Below, in pieces: positions 1 to 56,030 of a stretch of 64,000 bases of DNA. How positions within the stretch are numbered: the first letter of the stretch is position 1; each line of letters opens with the position of its first letter. The stretch lies in the sequence record OZ196593.1. One strand, written 5' to 3'. The position numbers were made by a program, and so were the translations under genes. The notes under the pieces are model-generated. The model searched no databases. It was not told the DNA's origin and worked only from the letters and a program-made list of their open reading frames with translations.

Positions 1-869
1 TCTTGATGCTTAGTGTTGCGCATAGCAGGTGCAATACGACTAGCAATAGTTTGCAAGTCAATTGGGATATCTAATGTACCAAGCGCGATACGAGCAACGT
101 CAGCCACTTCAGGCACACTATGATTCGCAGCGCCTTGCAAGCGTTCACGATATACACCGCGAGTTGCAGGGGTTAGAGCAGGCATCACCATTGGCGTGTT
201 CGGAACACGTTTCGCTGGTTTGTCTTCGATCCATTCAGCTTTCACTTCGTCGTGAAACTCTTCAAATCCTGGTACCATATCAGCCGTAACGATAATCGAG
301 CGTGCAGTCGCGATGTCTGGTTCTTTAGACATTTGAGCAGCTAGAATATTGATAGTCTTTTCTTCAGACTCAAGTAGCTTATCGGTATTGTATCCCGGTT
401 TGTTGATAACGAAGAAGCTGAAATCTTCAGCCATTTCATGATCGCCAACGTTTAGAATCTTAGTTGTTTCACAGCCGTAGCGTAGTTTCTTGAATAGCGT
501 TTTGATACGCATATCGAACATCTTGCCACTGCCTTTCTTTTGTACGCGCATTGATACAGCGTTTGCACGAACTTTCAGCATGAATTCTTGAACAAGTTTA
601 ACCAACGTTTCTTGGAACTTTTGTTGATCACCCATATCACGAATAGTTAATCCGCCTTTTTTACCGCGCATTGCAGTAACAGTACAGAACCAAGCGCGTT
701 TAGTACGGTCGCCTAGCCCCGATTTTGTTTTACTTGTAAACGTGACAACGACATCTTTGGTCTCACCAGCCATATCGATGACAAAGTAACGATTGACTTT
801 GGTCGAGCGAGCCGGGTAGTAGTTATAAGTTGAAGTTGCTGTCTCATTTAATTCTTGAAATCCAATCAT
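1..869 (-). CDS. alt: Alt-like head-packaged protein (ADP-ribosyltransferase family), N-terminal part; runs off window edge
   Basis: Not in ORF track because no stop in window. Manual translation from ATG 869: MIGFQELNETATSTYNYYP...KVRANAVSMRVQKKGSGKMFDMRIKTLFKKLR...FSFFVINKPG...KTINILAAQMSKE, resembling the T4 Alt N-terminal region; late promoter upstream. Catalytic domain not visible in window. Confidence 0.65.
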   Translation of the reverse strand, partial: MIGFQELNETATSTYNYYPARSTKVNRYFVIDMAGETKDVVVTFTSKTKSGLGDRTKRAWFCTVTAMRGKKGGLTIRDMGDQQKFQETLVKLVQEFMLKVRANAVSMRVQKKGSGKMFDMRIKTLFKKLRYGCETTKILNVGDHEMAEDFSFFVINKPGYNTDKLLESEEKTINILAAQMSKEPDIATARSIIVTADMVPGFEEFHDEVKAEWIEDKPAKRVPNTPMVMPALTPATRGVYRERLQGAANHSVPEVADVARIALGTLDIPIDLQTIASRIAPAMRNTKHQ

Positions 870-901
870 TTTTTAGACTCGCCTTATTGAAAATATACCT
901 G

Positions 902-909
902 TATTTATG
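902..909 (-). promoter_or_regulatory. T4-type late promoter (CATAAATA) for alt-like gene
   Basis: Minus-strand CATAAATA about 30 nt upstream of ATG 869; T4 late consensus TATAAATA. Confidence 0.7.
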
Positions 910-960
910 AGAGTGCATTAACACCCATCTAGAACTATTTAAACTTTTTTACGAAAGTGG

Positions 961-1008
961 TTGCATCGAATTCAAAATACGCCTAATATCTCTACATCGA
1001 AACGAAAC
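961..1008 (+). promoter_or_regulatory. Early sigma70-type promoter plus ATCGAAACGAAAC +1 motif
   Basis: TTGCAT-17 bp-TAATAT, motif at 996-1008. Confidence 0.8.
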
Positions 1009-1032
1009 ACACTAATCACAAGAGAGAAAATT

Positions 1033-1551
1033 ATGACTAAACTTAACGCTCAGACTGCTACTAACGCTCAAATCGCTGAATTCTACGGTATGACTCTTGA
1101 TCCGTCGGGTATGCCTTACGCACTTGACGCGAAATCACGTCGTCATTACATCACTGATTTGCGTTCAAAGTTTCGTAAAGAAGCAGCTAAGAAGACTTCA
1201 CGCAAAGTAGCTACTGCGACTCGTAAAATTGAATTACCAAGCGCAGAAGAGCATTTAGCGATGCTGAACACTGATTTCACTGAACATCAATGGTTCATTC
1301 GCGAATCTCAGCCGGGTCTTGATATCTCAGAACTTGGTTTACGCTTCTACTTCATCGGTGGTGCTAACATTCATCAACTGAACATTCGCACAAAACACTT
1401 CTCAAACAAAGAGTTAGAGAATTTCTATGCGAACAAGAAGATTCTGAAAGGTCACAAGGGTACTGGTTCAGTCACAATTGGCTCTCTTTCATACGAAGAA
1501 GTTGTTCAAATCGCACAAGATATGATTGAAAAGTCAGAAAGTGTGATTTAA
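1033..1551 (+). CDS. Hypothetical early protein
   Basis: ORF; true start ATG 1033 after GAGAGAAAATT (ORF track start 961 lies in the promoter). Confidence 0.8.
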   Translation: MTKLNAQTATNAQIAEFYGMTLDPSGMPYALDAKSRRHYITDLRSKFRKEAAKKTSRKVATATRKIELPSAEEHLAMLNTDFTEHQWFIRESQPGLDISELGLRFYFIGGANIHQLNIRTKHFSNKELENFYANKKILKGHKGTGSVTIGSLSYEEVVQIAQDMIEKSESVI

Positions 1552-1570
1552 GTCACGAAAAAGAAGTGTT

Positions 1571-1605
1571 CGGGTATTGACAGTAACATCGAAATACCCG
1601 ATAAT
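1571..1605 (+). promoter_or_regulatory. Early promoter within an inverted repeat
   Basis: TTGACA(1577)-17-GATAAT; CGGGTATT...AATACCCG inverted repeat. Confidence 0.7.
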
Positions 1606-1650
1606 AAACACATCAAGACGACATAGACAACTACTTAAAGAGAGAACATT

Positions 1651-2633: not shown

Positions 2634-2876
2634 ATGATAACAATCTACACAATTCCTAACTGTGACGGTTGCCGACATGCAATCGCACTCTGTAAGTTCA
2701 AGAAAATCCCTTTCGAAGAAATATCCTTAGATTCTCAGTCTAAAATCGATGCACTTCATCAACGTCTTGGCGGCAATCGAAACATTCGAGTCCCGTTAGC
2801 TGTTGACTCTGACGACACGTATATCGGTCACTTACCAGAGCTTAAACAGTACGTTGATAGCAAGCTGTATAAATAG
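2634..2876 (+). CDS. Glutaredoxin
   Basis: 80 aa, TIYTIPNCDGC (CxxC), VP motif, YIG. Confidence 0.9.
   Translation: MITIYTIPNCDGCRHAIALCKFKKIPFEEISLDSQSKIDALHQRLGGNRNIRVPLAVDSDDTYIGHLPELKQYVDSKLYK
2868..2875 (+). promoter_or_regulatory. Late promoter TATAAATA
   Basis: Perfect T4 late consensus upstream of capsid-family gene. Confidence 0.9.
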
Positions 2877-2933: not shown

Positions 2934-3833
2934 ATGACTGTATCTATCGGTAACGGTTTACCAGACATTGTTACAGTTCAGAAACGACTATATCCGCTTA
3001 TCTTTACGGAAATTGTGTCTGAACAACCAACAAAACAGCCAATCGCGACTGCGTACGGCTTTAAAGCTATCAAAGACACTGACGATTCAAGTGGCTGGGA
3101 GCAGTGGAAATTCTCGCTTGACCGTTGGTCTGCGACTGCCGAAGCAACAAAGCTAAAAACTGATATCTCTCTTGAAGCAATTCAAGACATGGAAGCACTT
3201 GGGCTTGGCACTGACTTAATCGTTGACTCACTAGCTGATCAAGCGGCAGATGACATCAACACGAATATCATCACTGCACTGAACGCGATTTCAACGCTTG
3301 GCACTGCGGTTAGCGTTAACTCAACAACTGGTAAATTCAACAAAGGTCGTGAGCTGTATGCTCTTGCACACGTCGAAGCTGCTAAACTTGAAAAAGAGAC
3401 TGGTTGCCAGGGTTCGTACATCGTAGCAGGCGGAGAGACATTTGGTCTAATCGTTGGTTCTGGTATGGCGAAACGCATTGGTGAATCGAACGTTTATAAA
3501 TTAGACTCTGGTCTTAAACTTGTTCATGACAAGTACGCAACGTCTGAATACTTCACGGTTGGCGTTAAGAAAGAAATGTCTGATTTCGAAATCTCAAGTC
3601 TGATCTTCAGCCCGTACAATTTCGATGGCGAAACTGGTGGCGGTATTGCTTATCAGCACGAAGGGCAAGACCCTAAGACATTCAACCCAATCTTCGCGAT
3701 TATCGCACGATACGCACTGACAGTTGCACCGCTTGAATCTGATCAAACGGGCGCTAGTGATATCGATTGGGACGATCTTGGTGACAAGGCTAACAGTTCT
3801 AAGCTATCAGCAACATTTGCCGTAACGCTATAG
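2934..3833 (+). CDS. gp24: Capsid vertex protein gp24-like (short gp23/gp24 family member)
   Basis: EIVSEQPTKQP...KFSLDRWSATAEATKLKTDISLEAIQDM...DDINTNII aligns with gp23/gp24 core; late promoter. Confidence 0.75.
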   Translation: MTVSIGNGLPDIVTVQKRLYPLIFTEIVSEQPTKQPIATAYGFKAIKDTDDSSGWEQWKFSLDRWSATAEATKLKTDISLEAIQDMEALGLGTDLIVDSLADQAADDINTNIITALNAISTLGTAVSVNSTTGKFNKGRELYALAHVEAAKLEKETGCQGSYIVAGGETFGLIVGSGMAKRIGESNVYKLDSGLKLVHDKYATSEYFTVGVKKEMSDFEISSLIFSPYNFDGETGGGIAYQHEGQDPKTFNPIFAIIARYALTVAPLESDQTGASDIDWDDLGDKANSSKLSATFAVTL

Positions 3834-3841: not shown

Positions 3842-4363
3842 ATGAAAACACATTATGTAGATAATAAAGCTCTATACGCATCGATTTGCGAATGGAAAGA
3901 AGAAATGAAGAACGCTGAAGAAGGCGTTTTCGTGCCAGTCCCTGATTTCGTGGCAATTAGTATCATGAAAATCAGCGAGAACTTGACTCGTCGTTACAAC
4001 TTTAGCAATTACACGCAGCCGTGGAAAGAAGAAATGGTTGGTGATGCGATTGAGCATTGCTTACGCTACGTGAAGAACTTCGACACTGAGCGATTCAAAA
4101 ACCCACACGCGTATATCACTCGTATCTGTTTCAATGCATTCGTGCAGCGTATTAAGAAAGAACGCCAAGATACAGCGATTAAATATAAAGTATTCTTGTC
4201 AGATTCGTCAAACTACACCGTTGAGGGTGAAGACGTTGATTTCGACTTCATGCAGCAAATGCTAGAACGCGTGAACTCATTCGACGAATCTCGCAAATCA
4301 AACAAATCTGAATCTGCCCCTAGCAAGAAAGACGATTCGAACTTACAAAAATTTTACGATTAA
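3842..4363 (+). CDS. gp55: Late transcription sigma factor gp55
   Basis: HYVDNKALY...NFSNYTQPWKEEMVGDAIE...NFDTERFKNPHAYITRICFNAFVQRIKKE. Confidence 0.97.
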   Translation: MKTHYVDNKALYASICEWKEEMKNAEEGVFVPVPDFVAISIMKISENLTRRYNFSNYTQPWKEEMVGDAIEHCLRYVKNFDTERFKNPHAYITRICFNAFVQRIKKERQDTAIKYKVFLSDSSNYTVEGEDVDFDFMQQMLERVNSFDESRKSNKSESAPSKKDDSNLQKFYD

Positions 4364-4372: not shown

Positions 4373-5809
4373 ATGTTAGGTACCTTTGACTCATTTCTGA
4401 GTGAAAATCGCCGTCAAACTCAGGGTGGTAAAATCTACCCTAAGTTTGGTCAAGTATTTGTTGAGCTAGGCACAGCTTCTACCGACTTCAGCAAAGAAAA
4501 AGGCGTTGAAACAACTATCGGTATGATGGAAAAAGCGAATGAGCTTAAATCTATCATGCAATCTAAACTATTCGAAGACAGCAACGTTGATCACACTAAA
4601 TTCGACATGAATCTAAGTGAAAACGTTTCAGTTATCAACTTGCTAATGGAAGAAGAATTCCTAGCATGTGAGCCGACTGAACTTGCGCAACTAAAGTCGA
4701 TGACCACTGTGTCTGAAGCTCGTATGCCAAGTCTTGTCGTGAAAGGCGGTGAACTTACGACTATCGTTAGCGAAGCAACTAAGCTTGGTTACAAAAAGTC
4801 TGATATTCACGTGATCTTCCCGATGACTGAAATGAAAATCGAACTTGCTGACAGTGACAAGCTAGTGGTTGAGGCACTATCGTTTGATGGTCGTACAGCT
4901 ACTGAGATTCTAGCAATGGGTTCACGCATTCAACTTGGCGACGTTTACGTAGTGAGCGAGTCCGTTGAGTCGAACGCTGACGTGCTAGGTCTTGAAGAGA
5001 TTCGCATCAATCGCATGACGCTTGGCGCTCTTAACCGTCACGTTATGAACTGCTTCGTTGTTAAAGAAGCGGCTGAAACGTCATACGCGCACGCTGCGGT
5101 TAAAGAAATCACTGATCGCCCTGCGCTATCAGGCTTCAAAGCATACGATTTGAAACCAAACGTGACTATGCTTGAACATGCACAAAACGCATTCTCAAAA
5201 GACATTGCTAAAGCTCCGCTTTCTGCAACTGCATGGGAAAAGCTTGTTGATGTGAAAGAAGTGTATTTCGACAATGGTTGGAAACTGAAGCACAACAACA
5301 CAAGTCTTGTTCTAACAAACGCTGAAAACGCTATGCGTCATGGTCGTGTTTGTGAAGAATATCGCGTGCAACTGTCTGAAGCAGGCTATCCGCTTCTTGA
5401 TATGATCGCGATGATGGAACGCAATGAAGAAATTCGTTGGGACTGTGCTTCGTTTGCTAAACATATGATGAAATTCGACGGTGCTATCACCCCAGAACGT
5501 CAATCTGTGACAGCATTTACGACTGAATCCGCTTCTAATCGCGTATTCCACCCGCATGTGATGTCTGACCTACGTCCAGTTACTGAAGCGGCAGACGACG
5601 TTGACAGCTTGATTCGTGCTATCGCGAATGATCAGTTCAGTTCATTCAAGATCAGTCAAGCATTCTCTGAGCAGATGCTAGACCAAGAAACGCTTTACTC
5701 TATGATGGAATCAATCGTTTCTGAAGGCATCGACGTAGACGCTGATGGTGATTTGATTACTTTCAAAGTGAACGCGACTCAGTACCACATCAAACTAGAT
5801 ATTAAGTAG
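4373..5809 (+). CDS. Putative head-packaged protein (478 aa), possible degenerate P-loop kinase N-domain
   Basis: N-terminus MLGTFDSFLSE; many hydrophobic-x-E-A/S motifs; YPKFGQV...LGYKKSDIHV recalls a phage P-loop kinase family but Walker A is eroded. Confidence 0.5.
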   Translation: MLGTFDSFLSENRRQTQGGKIYPKFGQVFVELGTASTDFSKEKGVETTIGMMEKANELKSIMQSKLFEDSNVDHTKFDMNLSENVSVINLLMEEEFLACEPTELAQLKSMTTVSEARMPSLVVKGGELTTIVSEATKLGYKKSDIHVIFPMTEMKIELADSDKLVVEALSFDGRTATEILAMGSRIQLGDVYVVSESVESNADVLGLEEIRINRMTLGALNRHVMNCFVVKEAAETSYAHAAVKEITDRPALSGFKAYDLKPNVTMLEHAQNAFSKDIAKAPLSATAWEKLVDVKEVYFDNGWKLKHNNTSLVLTNAENAMRHGRVCEEYRVQLSEAGYPLLDMIAMMERNEEIRWDCASFAKHMMKFDGAITPERQSVTAFTTESASNRVFHPHVMSDLRPVTEAADDVDSLIRAIANDQFSSFKISQAFSEQMLDQETLYSMMESIVSEGIDVDADGDLITFKVNATQYHIKLDIK

Positions 5810-5815: not shown

Positions 5816-6466
5816 ATGGCTAAATCATTAAACGATTTTCTGACTGAAGTTCAGAAATATAGCTCGGCAGCTACATCTATTCGCGGTAAAGAAGTTGCCG
5901 CGTTGGTTAAACTGTTCAAAGCGGGCATGTTTGTACCGAGTGGTACTGCATTAGATTACGGTGCGGGTAAGTACGGTCGTAATGCTGAATACTTACGTGG
6001 CGAGGGTGTTCGCACTTACGCATACGACAAGTTCAACGGTACATCGGCAGACGGTTGGGTTGACGTGAGTCTAACAATCCCAGCGGGTCAAATGTTCGAT
6101 ACGTCGTTCACGTCGTACGTTCTGAACGTAGTTCCACAAGAAGTCGAAGCTGAAATCATTCGCGAGATTGAATCACTTACGACTGGTAAAGTGTTCCACA
6201 TTACACGTGGTTCTGACATCACTCAAACGGTATTCAACGTTATCAGTGGTAAGTCTAAGAACGCAGTGATGATGGAATTCCTTGAAACTGAGCAACCAGA
6301 TTTGTACGCTCAAGTTCAAGCAGGTGAAAACTTGAAAGCAGTAGCTAAAGAGATCGCGACTCGCGGTGTCGTTACAGCTAAAGACAGTTTCCAACGCATT
6401 CCTGACCTTTCTCAGTACGGTTACAAACGTTCTGGTTCTGGTGCATCGATGGTGTGGACAAAATAA
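5816..6466 (+). CDS. Class I SAM-dependent methyltransferase with capsid-targeting-like N-terminus
   Basis: ALDYGAGKYGRNAEYL (motif I), YAYDKF, FDTSFTSYVLNVV; N-terminus MAKSLNDFLTE. Confidence 0.8.
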   Translation: MAKSLNDFLTEVQKYSSAATSIRGKEVAALVKLFKAGMFVPSGTALDYGAGKYGRNAEYLRGEGVRTYAYDKFNGTSADGWVDVSLTIPAGQMFDTSFTSYVLNVVPQEVEAEIIREIESLTTGKVFHITRGSDITQTVFNVISGKSKNAVMMEFLETEQPDLYAQVQAGENLKAVAKEIATRGVVTAKDSFQRIPDLSQYGYKRSGSGASMVWTK

Positions 6467-6482
6467 TTTCGATTATTTCAAT

Positions 6483-6537
6483 AAAAGGGTTGCTTCGGCA
6501 ACCCTTTTTGCGTATTATAGCTATATCGAAACGAAAC
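6483..6537 (+). promoter_or_regulatory. Terminator/early-promoter hybrid (PeSL-like), copy 1
   Basis: AAAAGGGTTGC-TTCG-GCAACCCTTTT hairpin holding -35 TTGCTT, 17 bp, TATTAT, then ATCGAAACGAAAC. Confidence 0.9.
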
Positions 6538-6542
6538 GACTG

Positions 6543-6571
6543 TTTAATACGTCATCAATCTGTTTTATACT
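6543..6571 (+). promoter_or_regulatory. GTTTA-class early promoter
   Basis: (G)TTTAAT-17-TATACT. Confidence 0.75.
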
Positions 6572-6597
6572 ATGAATCTACTTGAGAGAACAATATT

Positions 6598-7044
6598 ATG
6601 ATCTATATTCAAACTAGCAACATCCTATCTGACGACACTCTTGGCTTTGCGCTTGGTGGTGCCCCTCGTCTCGATACTTTGCCAGAAAAAGAACGCAATA
6701 ATGTTCTTCTCAAAGCACTCGAAATCAAACTATATGAACGTCTGCCGTCAACTGCTGTATTCGATCATCTACTTCAAAACTCTATCCCGTTCATCGCGAT
6801 TCTGAGCGATATCGAAGAAATTGCTATGCAGCAATCGATTTGGTTCGAAGCAATTTCGAAGAACAAAGGTATCGATATCATGTACACTGCGATGTCTGAC
6901 GTTGAACACAGCGAAGACACGATGCTAATTGCTGAAGATCGCGACGCTCTAATTCGTCAAGGTCAAGCAGGTGGTCGTATTCTACCATTTAGCACAGAAA
7001 CGCAGATGCCATTCATCATCGAGACGCTTAACTTACCTCAATAA
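6598..7044 (+). CDS. Hypothetical protein
   Basis: ORF with GAGAGAAC SD-like leader. Confidence 0.8.
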   Translation: MIYIQTSNILSDDTLGFALGGAPRLDTLPEKERNNVLLKALEIKLYERLPSTAVFDHLLQNSIPFIAILSDIEEIAMQQSIWFEAISKNKGIDIMYTAMSDVEHSEDTMLIAEDRDALIRQGQAGGRILPFSTETQMPFIIETLNLPQ

Positions 7045-7053
7045 GGAATCATA

Positions 7054-7428
7054 ATGCAAGAACAGACACCATTAGCTCAAGACACTGACATCGGCGAAGC
7101 AGTCGCTGACCCTGAAGTTCTTGAGTATCTTGAAAAGCTAAAGCAGCATCGCCAAGAAACTATCGAACGCGAAGCTAATCGTCGCATCAAGAAAAACAAG
7201 CGTGAGATTAAACGTCTGCACAAACACGCTCAGGAATGTCTAATCAGTGACAATAAAGACGGTTACATTTATGCTATCGGTAAGCTGCGTAAACTAACTG
7301 GTCATGTTGTCGGTGATGATGTGCTTGAAACTCTATGGCAAACAAGTCGTGAGCAAGTACAAAAGATCGCTGCTTCATTCGCTGAAGCTCAAGCAAACTT
7401 GCCTGAAGGGCAAAATTTCAGTCAATAG
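7054..7428 (+). CDS. a-gt.4: T4 a-gt.4-like conserved protein
   Basis: KKNKREIKRLHKHAQECL...YIYAIGKLR matches a-gt.4; syntenic between gp55 and gp47. Confidence 0.75.
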   Translation: MQEQTPLAQDTDIGEAVADPEVLEYLEKLKQHRQETIEREANRRIKKNKREIKRLHKHAQECLISDNKDGYIYAIGKLRKLTGHVVGDDVLETLWQTSREQVQKIAASFAEAQANLPEGQNFSQ

Positions 7429-7435
7429 GTGATAC

Positions 7436-7891
7436 ATGAACATCAAGTCAGGCGCTGGTTATCCAGCCAGTGCTTTGTCTAACTTCGCACCTCATTCATT
7501 CACACTGGATGGGGTTGAATGCGCGTCTATGGAAGGGTTTCTTCAGTCTTTGAAGTTCAAAAACCCTGAAATGCAACGTGAAGTCTGCAAACTAGTAGGC
7601 AAAGTTGCTAAAGCACGCGGTGCAAAGAAGAACTGGCAACGCACTCAAACTCTATATTGGCAAGGTGTGCCGATTCAACGTGCTTCTGATGGCTATCAGA
7701 CGTTGCTTGATGATGCATACGCTGCATTAGCTCAGAACGAGAAATTCAAGCGTGCATTACTCGCGACTGGTAAAGCTACTCTTACTCACTCTATCGGGCG
7801 TAAGAAGCAATCTGAGACGGTTCTAACGGTACAAGAGTTCTGTAGTCGTCTAACTGACATTCGCGACTTTCTTCAAGGGGTAGAATCATGA
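7436..7891 (+). CDS. 30.3: NADAR-family protein (T4 30.3-like)
   Basis: ALSNFAPHSFTLDGVECASMEGFLQSLKF...LYWQG...FKRALLAT...LTH. Confidence 0.85.
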   Translation: MNIKSGAGYPASALSNFAPHSFTLDGVECASMEGFLQSLKFKNPEMQREVCKLVGKVAKARGAKKNWQRTQTLYWQGVPIQRASDGYQTLLDDAYAALAQNEKFKRALLATGKATLTHSIGRKKQSETVLTVQEFCSRLTDIRDFLQGVES

Positions 7892-8394
7892 GAATGACAA
7901 ATCTTCGATTAGCCTTGAATTCAGTGTTTAAATCGCGTAAAGAAAAGCCTATTCTATATCTCGACATGGACAATGTACTCGTTGATTTTCAGAGTGGTAT
8001 TGATTCTCTCTCAATGTGGGAAAAGCATCAATATGATGGCAAATACGACGAATGTCCGGGAATCTTCGCGAACATGAAACCGTATGCAGGTGCTGTTGCA
8101 GCGTTTCTAGCACTGTCTGATCACTTTGACGTGTATATTCTGTCAACTGCTCCGTGGGAAAACCCGGGTGCATGGCAAGATAAGCGCAATTGGGTTCAGC
8201 GTTATCTAGGTGAACGCGCTCATAAGCGTTTGATTCTGTCGCATAACAAAAATCTGAACTTCGGTCATTATCTCGTCGATGATCGCACCGCGAATGGTGC
8301 AGGCGAGTTCATGGGCGAACATATTCACTTTGGCACTGACAAATTCCCTGATTGGTCGTCTGTTGTGTCATATCTTTTGAAGGAAATAGAATGA
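7888..8394 (+). CDS. 5'(3')-deoxyribonucleotidase, HAD family
   Basis: LYLDMDNVLVDF, ILSTAPW, DKRNWV, LILSHNKNL, LVDDR. Confidence 0.9.
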   Translation: MRMTNLRLALNSVFKSRKEKPILYLDMDNVLVDFQSGIDSLSMWEKHQYDGKYDECPGIFANMKPYAGAVAAFLALSDHFDVYILSTAPWENPGAWQDKRNWVQRYLGERAHKRLILSHNKNLNFGHYLVDDRTANGAGEFMGEHIHFGTDKFPDWSSVVSYLLKEIE

Positions 8395-15344: not shown

Positions 15345-15872
15345 ATGAACAACGAACGTTTTCAAGAACTATTACAATTCGGTGGCGAATTCGAAGCTGC
15401 CGTTGAGCCGAAGATCGCAAGGGTATTCTGTCATGCAGACCCGATGGCGATGCTTATCAATACGGCTACATCAAAAACAGATGACAAGCATGGGCGTGGT
15501 CAACGTCTGATGTTCTGTCAAGACACATCCGCAAGCTATATGCTACCAGACGTATTTGTTTTCAGTAAAGGAAAGCAGTTCTGCGTCGAAATCAAGTGTA
15601 AAAATCGATTCTTCCGACATAGTGACGGTAAATTGTATGCTGTCATTGACACATATAAGATCAAAGACTACGACGAAGCGGTTGAGAAGATGAACTTTGA
15701 CGGCATTTACTACGTATTTGGTGATAAGCAGACTCGTTCTGTCTATTTTGCCACTCCCGAACAAGCCAAAGAGATCGTCATTCGACTGGACTCGTTTGTC
15801 AGCAAGAAAAATCCGAAAGGTCAGTTTCATGCATGGGCAATCGACGAATTACATTCTCTAGGGAAATGGTAG
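15345..15872 (+). CDS. PD-(D/E)xK nuclease-like protein
   Basis: E..VE ... MLPDVFVF ... CVEIKCK motif. Confidence 0.7.
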   Translation: MNNERFQELLQFGGEFEAAVEPKIARVFCHADPMAMLINTATSKTDDKHGRGQRLMFCQDTSASYMLPDVFVFSKGKQFCVEIKCKNRFFRHSDGKLYAVIDTYKIKDYDEAVEKMNFDGIYYVFGDKQTRSVYFATPEQAKEIVIRLDSFVSKKNPKGQFHAWAIDELHSLGKW

Positions 15873-39850: not shown

Positions 39851-40762
39851 ATGAGTTCAAATTATGATCAAGTCTCTGCTATTGCGGCAGAGCATTTAGG
39901 TAAAAAAGCAGGCGATTACAGTGATTTCGTCGATATTGATACAGTCCGCCCCGATTTGCTAGTGCCAATCCCGCGTGAGCTGAATCGTACTGACTACGAC
40001 ATCACTAATGAAACGTTCGTCGGCTTTGATACATGGCATGGCTTTGAAGTGTCAGCACTGACAGAACAAGGTCTACCTGTCTCTGGTATGGCGAAAGTCG
40101 TATATCCGAGCGATAGTCCGAACATCGTTGAAAGTAAGTCGATGAAATTGTACTGGAATAGCTTCAACATGGCTAAGATTGGTACTGATCGCAATGGCGT
40201 TATGCACGCTATTCAGGTTATTGCATCACGCGACTTGTCAACTATCATCGGTGCACCAGTTCAAGTGACGTTCTTCACTGAGCGCAACACGCATCCGCAT
40301 GGCATGACTGGTTATGCTGAACTTGACAAGTACGTTTCTGATGAAGCAGTGTTCGATTCTGAGCAAGGTGCTGATGCTGATATTCTTGTCGCGTCGCATA
40401 TCAAGCGCATGAACGTGTTCACTCCGAATCTGCGTAGTAACTGTCGTGTTACACATCAACCCGATTTCGGTGATTTGTACATCTTCATGCAAGGTGAATC
40501 AACACCAACGGTTGATAGCTTAATGCAATACATCGTGTCTTTCCGTAAAGAGAATCACTTTCACGAAGAATGTGTGGAAATGATCTACAAAGCGTTGCAA
40601 GACAAGTTCAATCCAGACGATCTAATGGTCACAGCGTTGTATACGCGTCGTGGTGGTTGGAATATCTGTCCCGCTCGTGCGTCAAGCATTGAGCTGTTAC
40701 CGTCGGCTCTAAGTAGTTCCGCGGTCTCGCACACTAACGGTTCTTGTTTATTCCGTCAGTAA
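39851..40762 (+). CDS. queF: NADPH-dependent preQ0 reductase (two-domain type)
   Basis: IVESKSMKLYWNSF, LRSNCRVTHQPDFG, FHEECVE, LYTRRGG. Confidence 0.97.
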   Translation: MSSNYDQVSAIAAEHLGKKAGDYSDFVDIDTVRPDLLVPIPRELNRTDYDITNETFVGFDTWHGFEVSALTEQGLPVSGMAKVVYPSDSPNIVESKSMKLYWNSFNMAKIGTDRNGVMHAIQVIASRDLSTIIGAPVQVTFFTERNTHPHGMTGYAELDKYVSDEAVFDSEQGADADILVASHIKRMNVFTPNLRSNCRVTHQPDFGDLYIFMQGESTPTVDSLMQYIVSFRKENHFHEECVEMIYKALQDKFNPDDLMVTALYTRRGGWNICPARASSIELLPSALSSSAVSHTNGSCLFRQ

Positions 40763-40818
40763 TAAGAGATATAATGAGCATTCAATAGTGAGTGCTCATA
40801 TACTTGAGAGGTTATAAA

Positions 40819-41535
40819 ATGAAAGTAGTATCAGTTCTAAGCGGTGGCTTAGACTCAACAATCCTTACATACAAATTAGTAGACGAATACGGTGCCGACA
40901 ATGTGTTTGCATTATCGTTCTTCTATGGTCAAAAGCAGTCAATTGAGCTAGAAAAAGCTAAGTTGACCTGTCAAAAGCTCGGTATCGAGCATCGTCTAAT
41001 CGACATTTCGTTTCTTGGTGATGTAGTTGCTCCGGTGTGTGCAAACATCGTCGGTAGTGATTTAGCAATGCCGACTATTCAAGACGTTCTAGGCGACCCT
41101 CAGCCGCCAACTGAAGTCCCATATCGTAACATGCTGTTGAACACAGTAGCATTCAGCTTTGCGCAAGCTAACGACTGTCAAGCGGTGTACACTGGTATTC
41201 AAGTGCATGACGCATACGGTTATTGGGATTGTACGCAAGACTTCTTAGATGGTATGAATCAAGTGTCTAGCTTGAATCGTCAGCATGAGATTGCGCTCAT
41301 TGCACCATTTGCTCAGATGTCAAAAGCAGATGAAATCGCGATTGGTGTTAAGCTTGGCGTGCCGTTCGAAGATAGCTTAACGTGCTATGACCCGAACGAT
41401 GCAGGTGAGAGCTGTGGCAAATGTCCGTCATGTGCTGAACGCATCATGAACTTCGGAAAAGCAGGTATCAAAGACCCTGCACCGTACTCAGTAGACGTGC
41501 CGTGGGATCAAGTGTTCGCTAAGGCAGGTGTTTAA
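40819..41535 (+). CDS. queC: 7-cyano-7-deazaguanine synthase
   Basis: SGGLDST, VPYRNM, YWDCT, LTCY...SCGKCPSCAER. Confidence 0.98.
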   Translation: MKVVSVLSGGLDSTILTYKLVDEYGADNVFALSFFYGQKQSIELEKAKLTCQKLGIEHRLIDISFLGDVVAPVCANIVGSDLAMPTIQDVLGDPQPPTEVPYRNMLLNTVAFSFAQANDCQAVYTGIQVHDAYGYWDCTQDFLDGMNQVSSLNRQHEIALIAPFAQMSKADEIAIGVKLGVPFEDSLTCYDPNDAGESCGKCPSCAERIMNFGKAGIKDPAPYSVDVPWDQVFAKAGV

Positions 41536-42140
41536 TGTGCGGTCTATTCGCTGCGAAAACTAAAAAGGCGCTAGTTGAACTAGCGCAACATAACATGCAT
41601 CGTGGTTCGCGTACGCACTCAGTGACTGGCATTAAAGGCGGTCAGTTGTATGTCAATCGATACGACGGTGAGTTCAGTGCTGACAATGTACCAGACGGGT
41701 ATGACTTCTATATCTGTCACGTGCAAGCACCGACTAGTGCTCACGCAAAGTCACATCCCGCAGTTGTTGTACGCTCAGAGGGCAGACGTAACTTTGCATC
41801 ATGCGTATGGCACAATGGCATTCTGAAAGACGACTACATGAAAAAGCAGCGATATGATTGGGACACCAGACACATCGCAGACACGTTCCCGCAATCGCTC
41901 GACGAGTACGATGGTACGTTTGCTTGTTTTTACTACGCACTGCGCGAATTAAGCGTGTTTCGTAATGAGATCAGTCCGTTGTTCATGAGCGAAGATGGCG
42001 ATGCTTTCAGTAGCACACGAACAATCATAACTCCCGACGCACTTGAACCAAATAAAGTGTTTAACATCGACCTAACGTCGTTTAAAATGTCGCTTGTTAG
42101 AGAGTTCAAAACAGTAGAAAATCCCTATTTCTTTTTATGA
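41535..42140 (+). CDS. Stand-alone class II (Ntn) glutamine amidotransferase
   Basis: N-terminal (M)CGL, HRG, HVQAPT, HNGIL, RNEISPLF; coupled to queC stop. Confidence 0.85.
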   Translation: MCGLFAAKTKKALVELAQHNMHRGSRTHSVTGIKGGQLYVNRYDGEFSADNVPDGYDFYICHVQAPTSAHAKSHPAVVVRSEGRRNFASCVWHNGILKDDYMKKQRYDWDTRHIADTFPQSLDEYDGTFACFYYALRELSVFRNEISPLFMSEDGDAFSSTRTIITPDALEPNKVFNIDLTSFKMSLVREFKTVENPYFFL

Positions 42141-45490: not shown

Positions 45491-45679
45491 TTGAAAAAGC
45501 GTCATATATTTCTATTGGCGTGCGTGTGTGGAGCAATAGCATACTTCGCTGTGCTATTCTTCGCGGCATTATTGTACGCCGGTACAATGGAAATCGCATT
45601 ATCATTCGTGATAATCGTATTCATCGTATTGCTAAATATAGCAAGAGCTGAAATACAAAATAACGACAAAGCTCCGTAA
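45491..45679 (+). CDS. Small two-TM protein
   Basis: Hydrophobic 62-aa ORF, TTG start. Confidence 0.55.
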   Translation: MKKRHIFLLACVCGAIAYFAVLFFAALLYAGTMEIALSFVIIVFIVLLNIARAEIQNNDKAP

Positions 45680-45691
45680 GGGGCTTTTTTT
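45668..45691 (+). terminator. Intrinsic terminator
   Basis: AAAGCTCC-GTAA-GGGGCTTTTTTT. Confidence 0.8.
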
Positions 45692-45705: not shown

Positions 45706-46287
45706 ATGAAAAAATTCAATGAGTTCGCGAATGAACTAGCAGAAGCAGTCAATGACACAGTGTATCATGGCACTGCGATTGAGTATGCGATTGAAATACT
45801 TCGCCATGACAAGTTCAAGCTGAGTGATTCTAAAGGCAGTTGGTCAGATGACACGGACACTGAGATCAACCAGAAGCAAGGCAAAGACAAGCGATACTTC
45901 TTGTCTACTGCTCGTAGCTCATCTAGTCCATACATCAACGATCTTGACACGTTCATTCACTCAGAAGTGGGCGACGTTATCTTTGTTCTTGATGGTCGTA
46001 AGCTGAGTCACAACTATCGTGGTAAAGCAGTTGACTATGGTCGTGGCGATTATGCACCAGACTATGGCAATGAGCTTGAAGATCGCGTGTTCAGTAAGAA
46101 ACCAGTGTTGCCAAACGCGTCTAAGTACATCACAGAAGCACACGTGTTCATGAAATCAGAGAAGCAAGCAAGCAAGCTCGACGATTTCATGATGGAAGCT
46201 AAGAAGAAAGGCATTCCAGTGTGGGTATATGATGACAAACGCGCTTGGCAGCAAACAAATAAACGTAAGGCTGTCGAGACTCAATAG
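45706..46287 (+). CDS. ADP-ribosyltransferase-like protein with capsid-targeting-like N-terminus
   Basis: VYHGT, YFLSTARS, ELEDRV (H-S-E/ExE ART pattern); N-terminus MKKFNEFANELAE|A. Confidence 0.65.
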   Translation: MKKFNEFANELAEAVNDTVYHGTAIEYAIEILRHDKFKLSDSKGSWSDDTDTEINQKQGKDKRYFLSTARSSSSPYINDLDTFIHSEVGDVIFVLDGRKLSHNYRGKAVDYGRGDYAPDYGNELEDRVFSKKPVLPNASKYITEAHVFMKSEKQASKLDDFMMEAKKKGIPVWVYDDKRAWQQTNKRKAVETQ

Positions 46288-52596: not shown

Positions 52597-52920
52597 ATGA
52601 ACATCATGAATGCACAAGACCTGCGAATCGTTGAAGAACTTATCGAGCAGAAAGACGCGACTGTTGTCGAAAAGTCTGACTATCGCGCTGCGATGGCATT
52701 TGCTTATGGTAGTATGTCTGCACCGCAACGCGAGATCTTCAAGACTTATCATAGCCCTTACTTAGCTGAACGCTATGACATTGAATACTGCACTGATACG
52801 CAAGTAATCTTGCCGACTGGTCACTTGAAGACTGCAATCGCGTTCATCAAAGACGTTCTACCAACGCAAGAAATTGATATTTTGAAGCGTGACTTTCAAT
52901 TTGACTTGGGGATATTGTAA
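52597..52920 (+). CDS. Hypothetical early protein
   Basis: Start ATG 52597 after GAGAGAACATT. Confidence 0.75.
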   Translation: MNIMNAQDLRIVEELIEQKDATVVEKSDYRAAMAFAYGSMSAPQREIFKTYHSPYLAERYDIEYCTDTQVILPTGHLKTAIAFIKDVLPTQEIDILKRDFQFDLGIL

Positions 52921-53456
52921 TGAAACTGAGTAACATATTATTATCAATGCTCGTCATTGCACTCATAGTCTCGATGGCTGGGTGCTCAGAGCCTGCAACG
53001 ATACCGACTGCGTATCAAGAAGGCGTGCAGTCTATTGATAGTGAGTTTCCCGATAACTCTCTCGATGCTGGTGGTCTTGATTGGGCGCATGAAGCTGTAG
53101 AAGAGACTGATCATTCGTTTGATGAGTATGATGACAGTGATAGCGGATTTGATTGGGGCGACGCTGCGATTGGTTTTGTAGCTGCTGAAGTGATTGACGA
53201 TGTGTTTGATTCGAGTAGCAGCAAGACAACGACTAAAACAGTCTACGTGCCAGTGTCTGATACTAAGAGTACACAGCCAAAAGCAGTAACGACTAGCACG
53301 AAGTCTGTTGCACCGACGACTAAGAAAGTAGTTAAGCCAAAGGCGAAGACTAAACAATCTAAACCAAAAGCGAAGAAAAAGAAGAAGAAATCTAAGTCTA
53401 AGAGCAAGCCACCTAAGAAGAAAAAGAAGAAGAAAAAGAAGAAAAAGAAACGTTAA
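52920..53456 (+). CDS. Lipoprotein with acidic core and poly-Lys tail
   Basis: Lipobox SMAGC; ends PPKKKKKKKKKKKR. Confidence 0.8.
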   Translation: MKLSNILLSMLVIALIVSMAGCSEPATIPTAYQEGVQSIDSEFPDNSLDAGGLDWAHEAVEETDHSFDEYDDSDSGFDWGDAAIGFVAAEVIDDVFDSSSSKTTTKTVYVPVSDTKSTQPKAVTTSTKSVAPTTKKVVKPKAKTKQSKPKAKKKKKKSKSKSKPPKKKKKKKKKKKKR

Positions 53457-53490: not shown

Positions 53491-54051
53491 CTATTTCTTT
53501 TTAGCTGCAAGCGTTTTAGCACGCTTAGTTGCTGTTGATATAGCTTTTAGTTCTTTTTCCATCTTGGCTAAGTCGCTGACAAACTTCTCTGAGTTCTTGA
53601 TGTCGCTACGCAGTGCGCCTTTCGATGTCGCGATGTCTAAATCGCTGTTCAAGCTCGTACGAAGCTTGTGAGTCAAGAATGTTGCACGCTCGATGTCTTG
53701 CTCGAACTTGGCTACTTTCTTCGGCGTCACTTCAGTGTCTTTGCTTACCGATTGGTACTTTTCAATGCGCTTCATTAGCTTTTTCAGCTCTTTGTAGTCT
53801 TTACGTGCTTGACCGCCTGCGAACAACGCGCCACCAATCAAACCATTGATGCCCATACTAATTGCGCCCCACGTTGCCAATGGAATTGCAAGAGCAAGAC
53901 CACCAGTAGCTGCACCTGCACCTGCTGCACCAAGAGCACCAATTGTTGCACCTGCAACTGCACCGGTAGCTGCTGCTCGTTTAGCCCATTGACTAATCGT
54001 TGCCTCGTCGAGTGGTTTTACTTCGAACTCGTCGAATGTTTTTAATTCCAT
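53491..54051 (-). CDS. Putative head-packaged glycine-zipper membrane protein
   Basis: N-terminus MELKTFDEFEVKPLDE|A; about 55-aa Gly/Ala hydrophobic hairpin; basic helical C-terminus. Confidence 0.7.
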   Translation of the reverse strand: MELKTFDEFEVKPLDEATISQWAKRAAATGAVAGATIGALGAAGAGAATGGLALAIPLATWGAISMGINGLIGGALFAGGQARKDYKELKKLMKRIEKYQSVSKDTEVTPKKVAKFEQDIERATFLTHKLRTSLNSDLDIATSKGALRSDIKNSEKFVSDLAKMEKELKAISTATKRAKTLAAKKK

Positions 54052-54070: not shown

Positions 54071-54138
54071 TGAGAGAGCGCGACCATCGAACCAATACTC
54101 GCAGTGACCGTGCGAAGAAACTCGGTCACACTCCCTCA
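54071..54138 (-). ncRNA. Candidate structured 5' leader (three-way junction)
   Basis: P1 54130-54138/54071-54079, P2 54123-54129/54104-54110 (7 perfect bp), P3 54099-54102/54080-54083; lies between late box and SD. Confidence 0.5.
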
Positions 54139-54154
54139 AAACTGTGTTATATTA

Positions 54155-54161
54155 TATTTAG
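54155..54161 (-). promoter_or_regulatory. Late promoter variant (CTAAATA)
   Basis: About 105 nt upstream of ATG 54051. Confidence 0.6.
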
Positions 54162-54282
54162 TGACAACTATTAATAAGAATGTCGTTTATAGCTCATTTA
54201 ACTGAAAATAGTTGTTGATTAAAGTGTAAAAATGACGTACTATGACGTAAATCAATATGAACTGCTTAAAAAGGACACAATC

Positions 54283-54711
54283 ATGACATCTACATCAATT
54301 ATGCGCGGCGCTAACACAGTTGTACGTGAGCTACAAATCTTCTCTGGTGACACATCAACTGTTGTAATTGGTGCACCTGCAAGTGGCAAGAATGCAATGC
54401 TGCTTGGTATGTTAGCTCAACGCGGTGCTGAGAACTGCACGTTTATCTGCACAGAAATGTATGCACGTAAAGCAATCAATATGCTACCACCAAAAGGTTT
54501 AGCTGTTCAATCAAATGCATCATTTGAGTCAATTGTCGGTGCTGTGTCGCGTGCGACTGCAAGCGAACGCGAGTTCATTGTCATTGAACATCTACCATCC
54601 AACCCACTGTTCGACGCTGTTGACGTACTAGAGTCAATCGTTCGAGCACACGATAAAAAACTAATCATCGGCATGCAAGCAGCACGCGATGGTATCACGC
54701 GAGATCTATAA
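54283..54711 (+). CDS. Degenerate P-loop (RecA/DnaB-like) protein
   Basis: GAPASGKNA Walker A-like, FIVIEHL Walker B-like; start ATG 54283. Confidence 0.5.
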   Translation: MTSTSIMRGANTVVRELQIFSGDTSTVVIGAPASGKNAMLLGMLAQRGAENCTFICTEMYARKAINMLPPKGLAVQSNASFESIVGAVSRATASEREFIVIEHLPSNPLFDAVDVLESIVRAHDKKLIIGMQAARDGITRDL

Positions 54712-54712
54712 C

Positions 54713-55744
54713 ATGAATCAAGAACAAGTATTGTTTAAGAGTCTGTTCGGCTCTAAACTATATGGTACAGACACACCAGAGTCAGACACTGACTACAAAG
54801 AAGTCTACATGCCATCCGTAAGACGATTGCTTCGCGGGTTGGCTATCAAAAACAGTGCAGAATCAACGGGCGACGACTTCAGCACGAATGGCGCTGACGA
54901 TGAAGACTACGAACGCATCCCTGTTCAAGTGTTCACTCGCGACTATCTAGCAGGTCAATCGTATGCATATGAGCTTGCTCACTACGCATTGCACGATGGC
55001 GTTGAAGTTGACCCAGCATTCCGTAAGCTATGTGCTGAACTTGTTGTGCGTTACTCTACTAGCAATGTGAAAGCAATGACTGGTTATGCAATGAGTCAAG
55101 CGCAGAAGTATGGCGTGAAAGGTACTCGACTGAACAGCATCATGCTATTTCAGAACGCGTTGCTGTATCATCACACTGACAAGACGATGAAGATCGGTGA
55201 CTGTCTTGAGTTGTGTGAAGAGCTATGGGCACTTGCTGCGAACGACGAGAACATCGGATTTGAGTGGTATCGTGGTCCCACGTCACGCACGCCAGAGCAA
55301 GTGAAAGATCCTGCGTTCACTGTGTTAGGCAAAGTCAACGGTCTTGAAGTTACATTCGAAGAAGCGTTGCTGCGATGTGAGAAGCAAGCAGCCAAGTATG
55401 GTGCACGAGCTTATGCAGCACGAGCAGCGTCTGGCTCTGACTGGAAAGCTATCTCTCATGCTCTACGTGTGATCGACCAAGCTATCGATATCTTGAACGG
55501 TAAGATGCTTGAGTTCCCACGCCCGTTAGCGTCGTTCTATCGCGATGTGAAAGCGGGTAAGTACAAATGGGAGTATGTGTCGAGCGTAATCACAGAACGA
55601 TTAGAGACGCTTGCAGAAGCGCAAGAACGTACTGAATTGCAATCACACTCGCCGCAACTCGTTGAATCGTTCTATGAATGGCACGACGACTGGTTAGATG
55701 AGTTGTACTTTCCGTCAATTGAAAGCTTCAGCGACTTAGTATAA
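54713..55744 (+). CDS. Pol-beta-superfamily nucleotidyltransferase (RlaP/nrdC.11-like)
   Basis: FGSKLYGTDTPESDTDYKEV, DWKAISHALR. Confidence 0.85.
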   Translation: MNQEQVLFKSLFGSKLYGTDTPESDTDYKEVYMPSVRRLLRGLAIKNSAESTGDDFSTNGADDEDYERIPVQVFTRDYLAGQSYAYELAHYALHDGVEVDPAFRKLCAELVVRYSTSNVKAMTGYAMSQAQKYGVKGTRLNSIMLFQNALLYHHTDKTMKIGDCLELCEELWALAANDENIGFEWYRGPTSRTPEQVKDPAFTVLGKVNGLEVTFEEALLRCEKQAAKYGARAYAARAASGSDWKAISHALRVIDQAIDILNGKMLEFPRPLASFYRDVKAGKYKWEYVSSVITERLETLAEAQERTELQSHSPQLVESFYEWHDDWLDELYFPSIESFSDLV

Positions 55745-55747
55745 ATA
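55740..55747 (+). promoter_or_regulatory. Late promoter TATAAATA
   Basis: Perfect consensus 28 nt before ATG 55776. Confidence 0.9.
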
Positions 55748-55775
55748 CAGTTAAACGAACAATGGAGTTTAACAC

Positions 55776-56030
55776 ATGACAAAAGGTTTCAATGAATTTC
55801 ACGCGAAAGGTGAAGTTAAGATTCAAGAGACTACACAAGAGTTCCACGAACGTGTAGTCAAGCACCGTAAAGTAGATGATGCACGCTACCCTGACCTATC
55901 TAAATCTGGTCTTGAGGGTCCGTACACAGACTTGAATGGTAAGGTATACTACTACGATTCTCGTGAGGGTATGCACTACGATCCAGATACTGATCTCTAC
56001 ATTACAGCAAAAGACTTACGTTTACCGTAA
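55776..56030 (+). CDS. Small late protein with capsid-targeting-like N-terminus
   Basis: MTKGFNEF...KIQE|T; GLEGPY...YYYDSREG.HYDPDTD aromatic repeat. Confidence 0.7.
   Translation: MTKGFNEFHAKGEVKIQETTQEFHERVVKHRKVDDARYPDLSKSGLEGPYTDLNGKVYYYDSREGMHYDPDTDLYITAKDLRLP

Follow-up and report, generated by a model that had tools for sequence, protein, structure and literature searches.

Does a T4-type phage of Vibrio load a series of mostly unrelated proteins into its head by means of one common N-terminal signal? This question is raised by a stretch of 64,000 nucleotides (referred to here as the window), whose sequence is identical to bases 62001-126000 of Vibrio phage K567 (OZ196593.1), a 255-kb KVP40-like T4-type myovirus of Schizotequatrovirus with Vibrio crassostreae as its isolation host. 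An earlier note on this DNA had singled out nine open reading frames (ORFs) with similar N-termini as candidate capsid-targeted proteins, and all nine were recovered where that note had placed them, each with the N-terminus it quoted. Our reading is that eight of them, together with about nine more genes across the genome, encode proteins that are loaded onto the scaffolding core through a T4-type capsid-targeting sequence (CTS), trimmed by the gp21 protease and retained in the head; we put the probability of this at about 0.8. The nine products, numbered P1 to P9 in map order, are listed below (aa, amino acids; a slash marks the predicted cleavage site; the leader of the KVP40 orthologue is given in brackets).

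1-869, minus strand: P1, N-terminal 289 codons of an Alt-like ADP-ribosyltransferase; leader MIGFQELNE/T (MIGFQQLTE/N)
4373-5809, plus strand: P2, 478 aa, no recognisable feature; leader-like MLGTFDSFLSE/N (MLGNFDSFLSE/N)
5816-6466, plus strand: P3, 216 aa; leader MAKSLNDFLTE/VQKYSS (MKQFCNFLAE/VQKYSS)
24467-26155, plus strand: P4, 562 aa, isoelectric point 4.2; leader MKLKLFENFYQEVRLDE/ISD (MKLFTEFYQEVRLDE/ISD)
28448-29503, minus strand: P5, 351 aa, gluzincin-like HELQH…HEINAR; short leader MIIIE/S (MIIFE/N)
33478-34344, plus strand: P6, 288 aa, putative DUF6934-family N-domain (~140 aa) and variable C-domain; leader MKFSEYQTELNE/AFDRP (MKFSEYQNELTE/AFDRP)
45706-46287, plus strand: P7, 193 aa, predicted DarT/Tpt1-type ADP-ribosyltransferase fold; leader MKKFNEFANELAE/A
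53491-54051, minus strand: P8, 186 aa, isoelectric point 9.8; leader MELKTFDEFEVKPLDE/A (MELKTFDEFKNSDELKE/A)
55776-56030, plus strand: P9, 84 aa, small, of the size of T4 internal protein IPI; leader MTKGFNEFHAKGEVKIQE/T (MQGFKDYFKKGEVKLQE/T)

The N-terminal leaders

How closely do these N-termini follow a single pattern? In P1-P4 and P6-P9 (8/9 ORFs), two hydrophobic or aromatic residues (Φ) of the targeting type stand three positions apart in the arrangement Φ-x-[ED/S/N]-Φ and are followed by [LI]-x-E, and a site of the [LI]-x-E type can be read at the end of the leader in all nine. The common pattern proposed in the earlier note holds for eight ORFs, with MIGFQELNE fitting it partly, but not for P5 (29503, minus strand), whose minimal MIIIE has no aromatic pair. 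By sequence, there are two leader forms: a long one resembling those of T4 IPI and IPIII, carried by P1-P4 and P6-P9, and a minimal one, M-x(2-3)-[IF]-E, carried by P5 and found outside the window in g0091 (MIIFE). The leaders in the T4 record read MKTYQEFIAE/A (ipII and ipIII) and MKTFKEFTSTTTPVSTITE/A (ipI). In IPIII, ten N-terminal residues are enough for packaging, CTS residues 4 and 7 serve targeting and residues 8 and 10 processing, and other proteins with CTS-like leaders occur in related phages (PMC9026906).

Such short patterns invite the question of chance. The strict pattern ^M.{0,6}F[QNDES][EDSN][FLY]..[LI].E matches six of the 115 genes annotated in the window, where positions inside proteins would lead one to expect 0.05 matches and shuffled N-termini 0.07, an enrichment of about 100-fold. 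A looser pattern gives eight matches against 0.5 expected, one of them a false positive (DNA polymerase), while [LI]xE by itself is uninformative (30 seen and 20-22 expected in the window genes). When all 7106 candidate starts in the genome were scanned, the seven strict matches all fell on annotated first starts, six of them in the window, and the motif is missing from about 440 other K567 genes. Three look-alike N-termini, 15345-15872 (MNNERFQELLQ), 23818-24042 (MSFETNKKLAE) and 32252-32443 (MRQHELQELVE), carry half of the motif and have no late box.

The leaders also persist through divergence. Between K567 and KVP40 the bodies of the candidates are 50-80% identical, and the leaders are retained; in P3 the leader sequence itself has been rewritten, with its pattern and the predicted mature N-terminus unchanged. 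In P6, MKFSEYQ is invariant in eight orthologues whose bodies are ~50% identical. Remote homologues of P5, some of them 22% identical, have longer leaders (e.g., MKFTEYTIITE/N) that end at the same Glu, and in the P7 family each of the 13 members starts with a short leader whose last residues, [LIM]xE, stand just ahead of the conserved domain. The content of the cassettes varies, because P7 is absent from the KVP40 group (no match was found in KVP40) and KVP40 has an additional tandem paralogue of P6 (KVP40.0115). In the GenBank annotation of KVP40, genes 24 and 55 are marked at the corresponding place, and all orthologues of the candidates, the Alt-like gene included, are "hypothetical".

Presence in the particles of a sibling phage

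Another important question is whether the proteins bearing these leaders are found in phage particles. A published liquid chromatography-tandem mass spectrometry analysis of particles of phage 6E351A (PMC12028318, ISME J 2025) lists 94 proteins (Table S4) and gives gene coordinates, lengths and PHROG numbers (Table S8). 6E351A belongs to the same clade as K567 and has 98% nucleotide identity to it over the compared region; genes were mapped between the two by length, strand, position and PHROG, and the orthologues of the candidates are 96-100% identical at the protein level, except for P7 (about 71%). Eight of the nine candidates were detected, with the following counts in replicates 1 and 2: P1 (_0095), 122 and 233; P3 (_0103), 31 and 79; P4 (_0134), 58 and 109; P5 (_0140), 18 and 25; P6 (_0154), 37 and 51; the P7 orthologue of 197 aa (_0174, 71% identical), 12 and 17; P8 (_0188), 7 and 21; and P9 (_0192), 6 and 13. 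The capsid loading claimed in the earlier note is supported in this way for P1 and P3-P9, but not for P2 (4373; VP6E351A_0102), which was not detected. Only 8 of the 106 other window genes were represented (Fisher p = 1.8e-7). Per kDa, the counts of Alt, P4, P3 and P6 are similar to those of gp24 and above those of gp21 and gp22. The three half-motif look-alikes (15345, 23818 and 32252) and the DNA polymerase, which have no full [LI]xE signal or no late box, are absent from the 6E351A proteome; the three look-alikes serve as useful negative controls.

The same scans had been extended beyond the window. Eight extra candidates were listed from motif, late-box and paralogue scans before the proteome was consulted, and all eight were detected in 6E351A particles, so that 16 of the 17 predictions are represented overall (p = 8e-11). 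In K567 coordinates, with the counts of both replicates, they are as follows.

60286-61146: leader MIIFE/AFSRP; 16 and 61
135069-135779: leader MKFEQFMESLNR…; 15 and 23
15750-16727, minus strand: 9 and 14
16727-17323, minus strand: leader MIEFLTE/; 21 and 34
18419-18904, minus strand: leader MFKFSEYENEV…LDE/; 17 and 14
192237-193343: leader MKKLNTFMEELQALNE/; 18 and 4
211496-211720, minus strand: leader MSDKTFDQFMSQLDE/; 14 and 15
216275-216523, minus strand: leader MKTLQEFLAE/A; 6 and 10

A further particle protein, _0391 (12 and 13 counts), begins with MKTLAEFLGE/A after correction of its start codon. At least nine leader-bearing genes therefore lie outside the window when 215326-215580 (minus strand) is included, most of them with a late box of their own and all of them represented in 6E351A particles; two small T4-ip-like proteins, MKTLQEFLAE/A and MKTLAEFLGE/A, are encoded in the tRNA region. 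Annotated starts seem to be placed too far upstream in four genes, K567 135015-135779 and 215326-215580 (minus strand) and KVP40.0116 and KVP40.0150 (L009 1469-2353 and 21441-21992): in each, translation from an internal ATG would yield a CTS-type N-terminus, a late box stands upstream of that ATG in both K567 cases, and the 6E351A annotation of the 135015-135779 gene is the shorter, 236-aa form.

Two other products of the window were recorded in 6E351A particles, a 103-aa protein beginning with MKFKMPNWLDN… (57803-58114, plus strand; 27 and 20 counts) and an 80-aa membrane protein (32013-32255, plus strand; 10 and 5 counts). Both lack a CTS-like leader and a late box; contamination may explain their presence, or else a different mode of loading. 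In the searched passages of PMC12028318, the authors take FolE, Acb1 and NARP2 in particles as a hint of immediate deployment, and these passages contain no mention of a targeting signal or of T4-type internal proteins.

Late boxes, machinery and points of doubt

If these are head proteins, are their genes expressed with the structural genes? The late boxes of structural genes in K567 take the forms TATAAATA, TCTAAATA, ACTAAATA and CATAAATA, which precede the genes for sheath, tube, gp22, gp23, gp34, gp37, gp4, gp48 and gp6. The five late boxes named in the earlier note, those of P1, P4, P5, P8 and P9, are all present, and a scan of the window with MTAAATA returned ten boxes, including the following.

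902-909, minus strand: late-promoter-like box CATAAATA, 32 nt upstream of P1; kept in KVP40
2868-2875, plus strand: box TATAAATA, heading gp24 (2934-3833), gp55 (3842-4363), P2 and P3
24428-24435, plus strand: late box TCTAAATA, 31 nt upstream of P4
29535-29542, minus strand: late box CCTAAATA, 31 nt upstream of P5; kept in KVP40
45631-45638, plus strand: box GCTAAATA, 67 nt upstream of P7, with a hairpin (45668-45687) before the start codon
54155-54162, minus strand: late box ACTAAATA, 103 nt upstream of P8
55740-55747, plus strand: late box TATAAATA, 28 nt upstream of P9; kept in KVP40

The number of boxes is at chance level (13.6±3.4 expected), and the idea that TAAATA boxes are commoner than chance was rejected; it is their placement that is significant. 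Six of the ten lie on the right strand about 28-103 nt upstream of P1, P4, P5, P7, P8 and P9, for which our own arithmetic gives p≈1e-11, ~0.6% of strand positions being eligible. The other four belong to the gp24-gp55-P2-P3 run, precede spanin genes, lie too near regA to serve it, or have no gene downstream.

Most of the ORFs were also said to end at their own terminator, and a hairpin with a T-run indeed follows seven of the nine (P1, P3, P4, P5, P6, P8 and P9); no terminator-like hairpin was found after 4373 (P2) or 45706 (P7). Three of the ORFs are inverted relative to their neighbours. The hairpins mapped are listed here.

6483-6510, plus strand: terminator-like hairpin and T-run after P3
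26158-26185, plus strand: hairpin after P4, with a weaker T-run
28415-28440, minus strand: terminator hairpin and T-run after P5
34346-34368, plus strand: terminator hairpin and T-run after P6
53463-53489, either strand: bidirectional terminator consisting of one perfect hairpin with flanking A- and T-runs, between the convergent 52920-53456 (plus strand) and P8 (minus strand)
56037-56052, plus strand: terminator hairpin and T-run after P9

The idea of separate late cassettes is consequently sustained for P1, P4, P5, P8 and P9, but not for P2 and P3, which lie in the gp24-gp55 run, nor for P6 and P7, which are discussed below.

Around the candidates, the gene order is T4-like (alt, 24, 55, 47, 46, 45, 44, 62, regA, 43, rnlA, pseT, cd), and after cd come a 7-deazaguanine cluster, 31, 49, rnlB, dam, rIIA, rIIB and dda. 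The cluster (35639-42140) is of the FolE/QueC biosynthesis type; passages of PMC12028318 report that dPreQ1 replaces 15% of deoxyguanosine in 6E351A DNA and that FolE is in the particles. Compared with phage K566, the sole difference indicated by the coordinate offsets is an 18-bp indel at window position 22900, inside a small membrane-protein gene (ORF 22833-23186).

The machinery that such leaders would require is encoded by K567: gp67, gp68, gp21 and gp22 are annotated at 6018-8190, gp23 is encoded as well, and sites of the [LI]xE type are found near the N-termini of gp21 (MELLIE…), gp22 (…QLLE/A) and gp68 (MKFITE…). The gp21 protease and the core proteins gp22, gp67 and gp68 were also found in 6E351A particles. 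By the mechanism we propose, most of the genes would be expressed late, as single-gene cassettes, each from its own gp55-type promoter. The CTS, in which an acidic or polar pair is enclosed by two hydrophobic or aromatic residues spaced three apart and a gp21-type [LI]-x-E comes 1-10 residues further on, would dock the protein onto the gp22/gp67/gp68 scaffolding core during prohead formation; the gp21 prohead protease would then cut off the leader, and the mature protein would remain beside the DNA inside the head. On the model of T4 Alt and IPI, it may finally be ejected into the Vibrio cell along with the genome. Docking on the core, cleavage at the Glu, ejection and any host-directed activity are steps that we infer.

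Several points weigh against this reading, and some of them would equally suit a different one, in which the N-terminus is a chance or translation-related feature and the particle detection reflects contamination by abundant late proteins in a polyethylene glycol (PEG) preparation. The motif patterns were refined after the matches were known, which makes the p-values optimistic. P2 has a good leader, and yet it is absent from the particle proteome. That proteome is of the sibling 6E351A, not of K567, and of PEG-precipitated rather than gradient-purified particles; the preparation clearly includes non-virion proteins, with single-stranded DNA-binding protein, dUTPase, ligase, thymidylate synthase, spanins and lipoproteins at 1-25 counts. 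Because their own counts are low and fall amid those of the contaminants, P7, P8 and P9 are individually less secure, P8 being itself membrane-like. The published values are counts at the protein level, so that removal of the leader is read from sequence, and ejection with the DNA is argued from T4 Alt and IPI only. As to expression, P6 has no late box of its own in the MTAAATA scan of the window, and the box of P7 is doubtful as a working promoter, a terminator hairpin lying between it and the start codon. The case of P6 is not disqualifying, because the T4 ip genes, which in the T4 record have early-type promoters, also have no late box within 70 nt. Chance and contamination, for their part, would have to account for detection of 8/9 candidates against 8/106 other genes and of 16/17 predictions made from sequence, for counts per kDa of Alt, P4, P3 and P6 at the level of gp24, for a leader pattern that outlives sequence turnover in P3 and a Glu that is invariant over deep divergence in P5, and for the lack of the motif in ~440 other genes; we regard that explanation as barely credible.

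For P8 considered separately, a more specific alternative is that it is a late membrane protein of lysis or superinfection, holin-like, that was carried along with membrane debris rather than belonging to the head. Its Gly/Ala-rich hydrophobic segment of ~55 residues, faint Pfam matches of holin and LapA type (E 0.01-0.04), the distance of 103 nt from late box to start codon and the other membrane proteins and lipoproteins in the same proteome would fit this view. On the other side, its leader (MELKTFDEF…L[DK]E/A) is kept in KVP40, and a similar Gly-rich protein of K567 (16727-17323), with the leader MIEFLTE/, its own late box and a head-gene neighbourhood, was detected at 21 and 34 counts. 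A membrane origin of P8 is, on this evidence, unlikely, and we keep it among the candidate head proteins.

Cargo, injection and relation to known systems

What, then, would these leaders carry? For P1, the adenosine diphosphate-ribosyltransferase cargo proposed in the earlier note was confirmed. Its gene exceeds the left end of the window, and the full-length protein (564 aa in K567 and K566) matches PHROG 802, scores 25.0 bits against Pfam PF03496 (ADPrib_exo_Tox; residues 330-498; cut-off 23.4 bits; T4 Alt, 124 bits) and finds T4 Alt by BLASTP with E 1e-5; candidate R-S-E motifs can be picked out by eye (…LLYRG…, …YMSAST…, …GENEFM…). For P2-P9, searches of Pfam, NCBIfam and PDB with single sequences and profiles gave nothing significant, and their features are described below at the level at which they were found.

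P2 is probably not a virion protein and not packaged. The idea that it is a scaffold-like protein degraded by gp21 is not supported, as its [LI]xE density (1.3 per 100 aa) is ordinary compared with that of gp22 (5.0). P3 contains a motif I resembling that of S-adenosylmethionine-dependent methyltransferases (ALDYGAGKYG), which has no statistical support, and a faint TehB match (E 0.047); the methyltransferase label given to it earlier stands as a motif-level hint, but significant Pfam or PDB matches were not obtained. The labels HEAT and pseudokinase found no significant support.

P5 has been called a zincin, and its HExxH…E motif (H130, E131, H134 and, in HEINAR, E191) is invariant in 21 homologues, as is E5 of the predicted cleavage site, but no fold match accompanies the motif. 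Its confident model (pLDDT, the predicted local distance difference test, 86) has no PDB match with E < 0.1, the significant matches among viral predicted structures are all to uncharacterized proteins, and SprT-like and metallopeptidase matches in the viral library are all sub-threshold; the sequence has no Pfam or PDB match. Some remote relatives carry a C-terminal NUDIX domain. On a metagenomic phage contig (ENA ERZ27292209, L013 5357-11328), downstream of RtcB, a P5-like HExxH-NUDIX fusion has on one side an 858-aa protein with a weak ART-PolyVal match and on the other a lysozyme-domain protein of 637 aa; this region of an unrelated phage looks like an injected-effector neighbourhood.

The ORFs had been described as mostly unrelated, which is true except that P6 (33478) and, probably, P4 (24467) have a DUF6934-type N-domain in common that had been missed. 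P6 scores only 17 bits (E 0.006) against DUF6934 (PF22028), under the 27-bit cut-off. A profile of P6 orthologues retrieves 1158 relatives, and the eight large ones that were scanned all pass PF22028 with 40-163 bits, so that membership of P6 in the family would rest on transitive homology. Many DUF6934 relatives are stand-alone proteins of 140-160 aa, many from metagenomes are 800-1500 aa long with 2-5 copies, and some also match GNAT, from which the domain may be derived. Within K567 the P6 domain recurs in 60286-61146, in 135069-135779 and in 15750-16727; in the last of these it lies in the C-terminal half and is preceded by an internal NLTE/SLDR. P4 probably starts with a DUF6934-like N-domain, followed by a D/E-rich repeat region; hhalign aligns it with the P6 N-domain family over 123 columns from the predicted cleavage site (probability 61%, E 8e-5). 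A P6/DUF6934 domain in the N-terminus of Alt was also considered, from faint Pfam matches of the truncated protein; it was not reproduced with full-length K567, KVP40 or T4 Alt or by hhalign and was rejected.

P7 is, according to its model, an ADP-ribosyltransferase fold of the DarT/Tpt1 type, which the earlier note had missed. The fairly confident model (pLDDT 78) finds DarT structures in Foldseek (7omx, 7omy, 7omw and 7omv; E 3e-4 to 8e-4, prob 1.0, template modelling (TM) score 0.46-0.50) and Tpt1 7yw4 with E 4e-3. Residues S67, T68, R70, D96-K99, E123, E125, D126 and R127 are invariant in the family, in the blocks S-T-x-R, D-G-R-K and E-x-E-D-R, and H21 is nearly so. An RNA-directed or RNA-repair role is possible, since P7 directly follows RNA ligase 2. 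In a 61.6-kb contig (JGI 3300076250, L012 7630-8981), a P7-family protein of 326 aa comes right after a ParB_N-domain protein, and the same region has a gp25-like (GPW_gp25) baseplate gene. P8 has, after its Gly/Ala-rich segment, a predicted helical basic tail.

These data raise a key question: are the packaged proteins effectors directed at the host, or mostly morphogenetic and structural passengers (core accessories, DNA-condensing or charge-balancing proteins like T4 IPII and IPIII, or head-size factors) that are packaged by the same CTS? The latter, our main rival explanation, can draw on T4 itself, where IPIII has an effect on head morphogenesis and no role is known for IPII (PMC9026906), on five DUF6934 paralogues (P6, g0091, g0237, X_16727 and probably P4) that suggest a repeated structural module, on the large and extremely acidic P4 and the basic P8, which would suit charge balancing, and on the fact that most of the cargo has no recognisable enzyme signature. 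It fits poorly with P1, a true Alt-type ADP-ribosyltransferase, with the predicted DarT/Tpt1 fold and conserved polar residues of P7 and with the invariant HExxH…E of P5. Relatives of P5 and P7 are, moreover, beside or fused to NUDIX, ART-PolyVal, lysozyme and ParB_N proteins, as is typical of injected polyvalent proteins, and P7 is a variable cassette (absent from KVP40, 71% identical between siblings that are otherwise 98% identical), which fits an arms race. We consider it quite unlikely that the set consists mostly of passengers.

Reasoning from T4 Alt and IPI and from the literature on polyvalent proteins (PMC5512222), we would give injection and early action of the whole set about an even chance, and a better one for P1, P7 and P5. 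A still broader reading is tentative and, in our judgement, falls somewhat short of even odds: schizotequatroviruses may encode some 17 or more separate CTS-addressed head proteins, all injected and acting before phage gene expression, as an unbundled, cassette-swappable equivalent of a polyvalent protein that aids a broad host range. The arsenal would include ADP-ribosyltransferases of the Alt and DarT/Tpt1 types, an HExxH enzyme, a methyltransferase-like protein, an acidic, possibly DNA-mimicking protein and a five-member DUF6934 family; if this were true, DUF6934 would represent a family of head-internal or injected phage proteins not recognised before.

Under the reading of CTS-loaded head proteins, 16 of the 94 proteins (about one sixth) in the particle proteome, which are listed there only as hypothetical, are accounted for in oyster-associated vibriophages of broad host range. 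A sequence rule (a leader ending in [LI]xE, usually with a late box) predicted virion content in 16 of 17 cases and corrects several start codons. The set provides candidates for pre-made, injected counter-defence or takeover proteins, chiefly the packaged protein with the predicted DarT/Tpt1 fold and the HExxH enzyme, in a phage-host system for which genetics is available and host defence repertoires are well described. Survival of the T4 CTS across deep divergence in Straboviridae would be useful for the engineering of protein delivery in non-coli phages.

The earlier note was aware of no description of this set as a system. The set cannot be called a new kind of system, as loading of diverse, fast-evolving internal proteins by a conserved CTS is established in T-even phages (PMC3012670, PMC9026906, PMC4122927), and no new mechanism is revealed here; a known T4 mechanism is extended. 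What is new is the set in schizotequatroviruses, its two leader forms, the packaged protein with the predicted DarT/Tpt1 fold and the DUF6934 expansion, and the link to an unexplained proteome. Like T4 IPI, IPII and IPIII, the K567 leaders have a hydrophobic or aromatic residue at each of positions 4 and 7, or displaced by 1-2 from there, and [LI]xE follows directly (as in ipII and ipIII) or at a distance of some residues (as in ipI); the cargoes are mutually unrelated, their genes are scattered, some in the tRNA region, and the proteins are in particles. Unlike the T4 system, K567 is a Schizotequatrovirus on a Vibrio host, its cargo includes no homologue of IPI-III and is in many cases large (20-64 kDa) and in some enzyme-like, most genes have their own late box in place of the early-type promoters of the T4 ip genes, and cleavage and ejection are argued from sequence and analogy. 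P1 resembles T4 Alt in its PF03496 and PHROG 802 membership, its position next to the DNA ligase gene 30, its short N-terminal propeptide and its abundance in particles; it differs in having ~24% identity in the catalytic region, an N-terminal half that cannot be aligned and a CTS-like leader (MIGFQELNE) where that of T4 Alt is very short. P7 has its best fold matches in DarT and Tpt1/KptA, with an identity of 10-14% and a TM score of ~0.5, but unlike them it bears a CTS and is found in particles.

Other examples of head-internal proteins that a prohead protease cuts after a Glu-containing motif and that are passed into the host are the ejection and inner-body proteins of phiKZ and SPN3US and the Dar proteins of phage P1 (PMC9026906, PMC7411985, PMC12810830); the cleavage logos, targeting determinants and lineages are different there, whereas K567 uses the canonical T4 gp21/gp22 core. 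A functional parallel concerns the polyvalent proteins of phages and conjugative elements (Iyer et al. 2017, PMC5512222), with which the K567 set shares a predicted role, the delivery of diverse enzymatic domains with the DNA, and an overlap of domains (ADP-ribosyltransferase, zincin-like HExxH, GNAT-like/DUF6934 and NUDIX), remote relatives of P5 and DUF6934 being fused or multi-copy in proteins of 800-1500 aa or located beside ART-PolyVal proteins. In K567, by contrast, the domains are in separate genes with one leader each, and loading would be by a cleavable CTS and not by a single large polypeptide or a MuF-type anchor. Each candidate has one recognisable module, or DUF6934 and one unknown domain, and only remote relatives are fused. 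With one module per gene and putative CTS loading, the set would therefore work like a polyvalent protein without being a member of that class.

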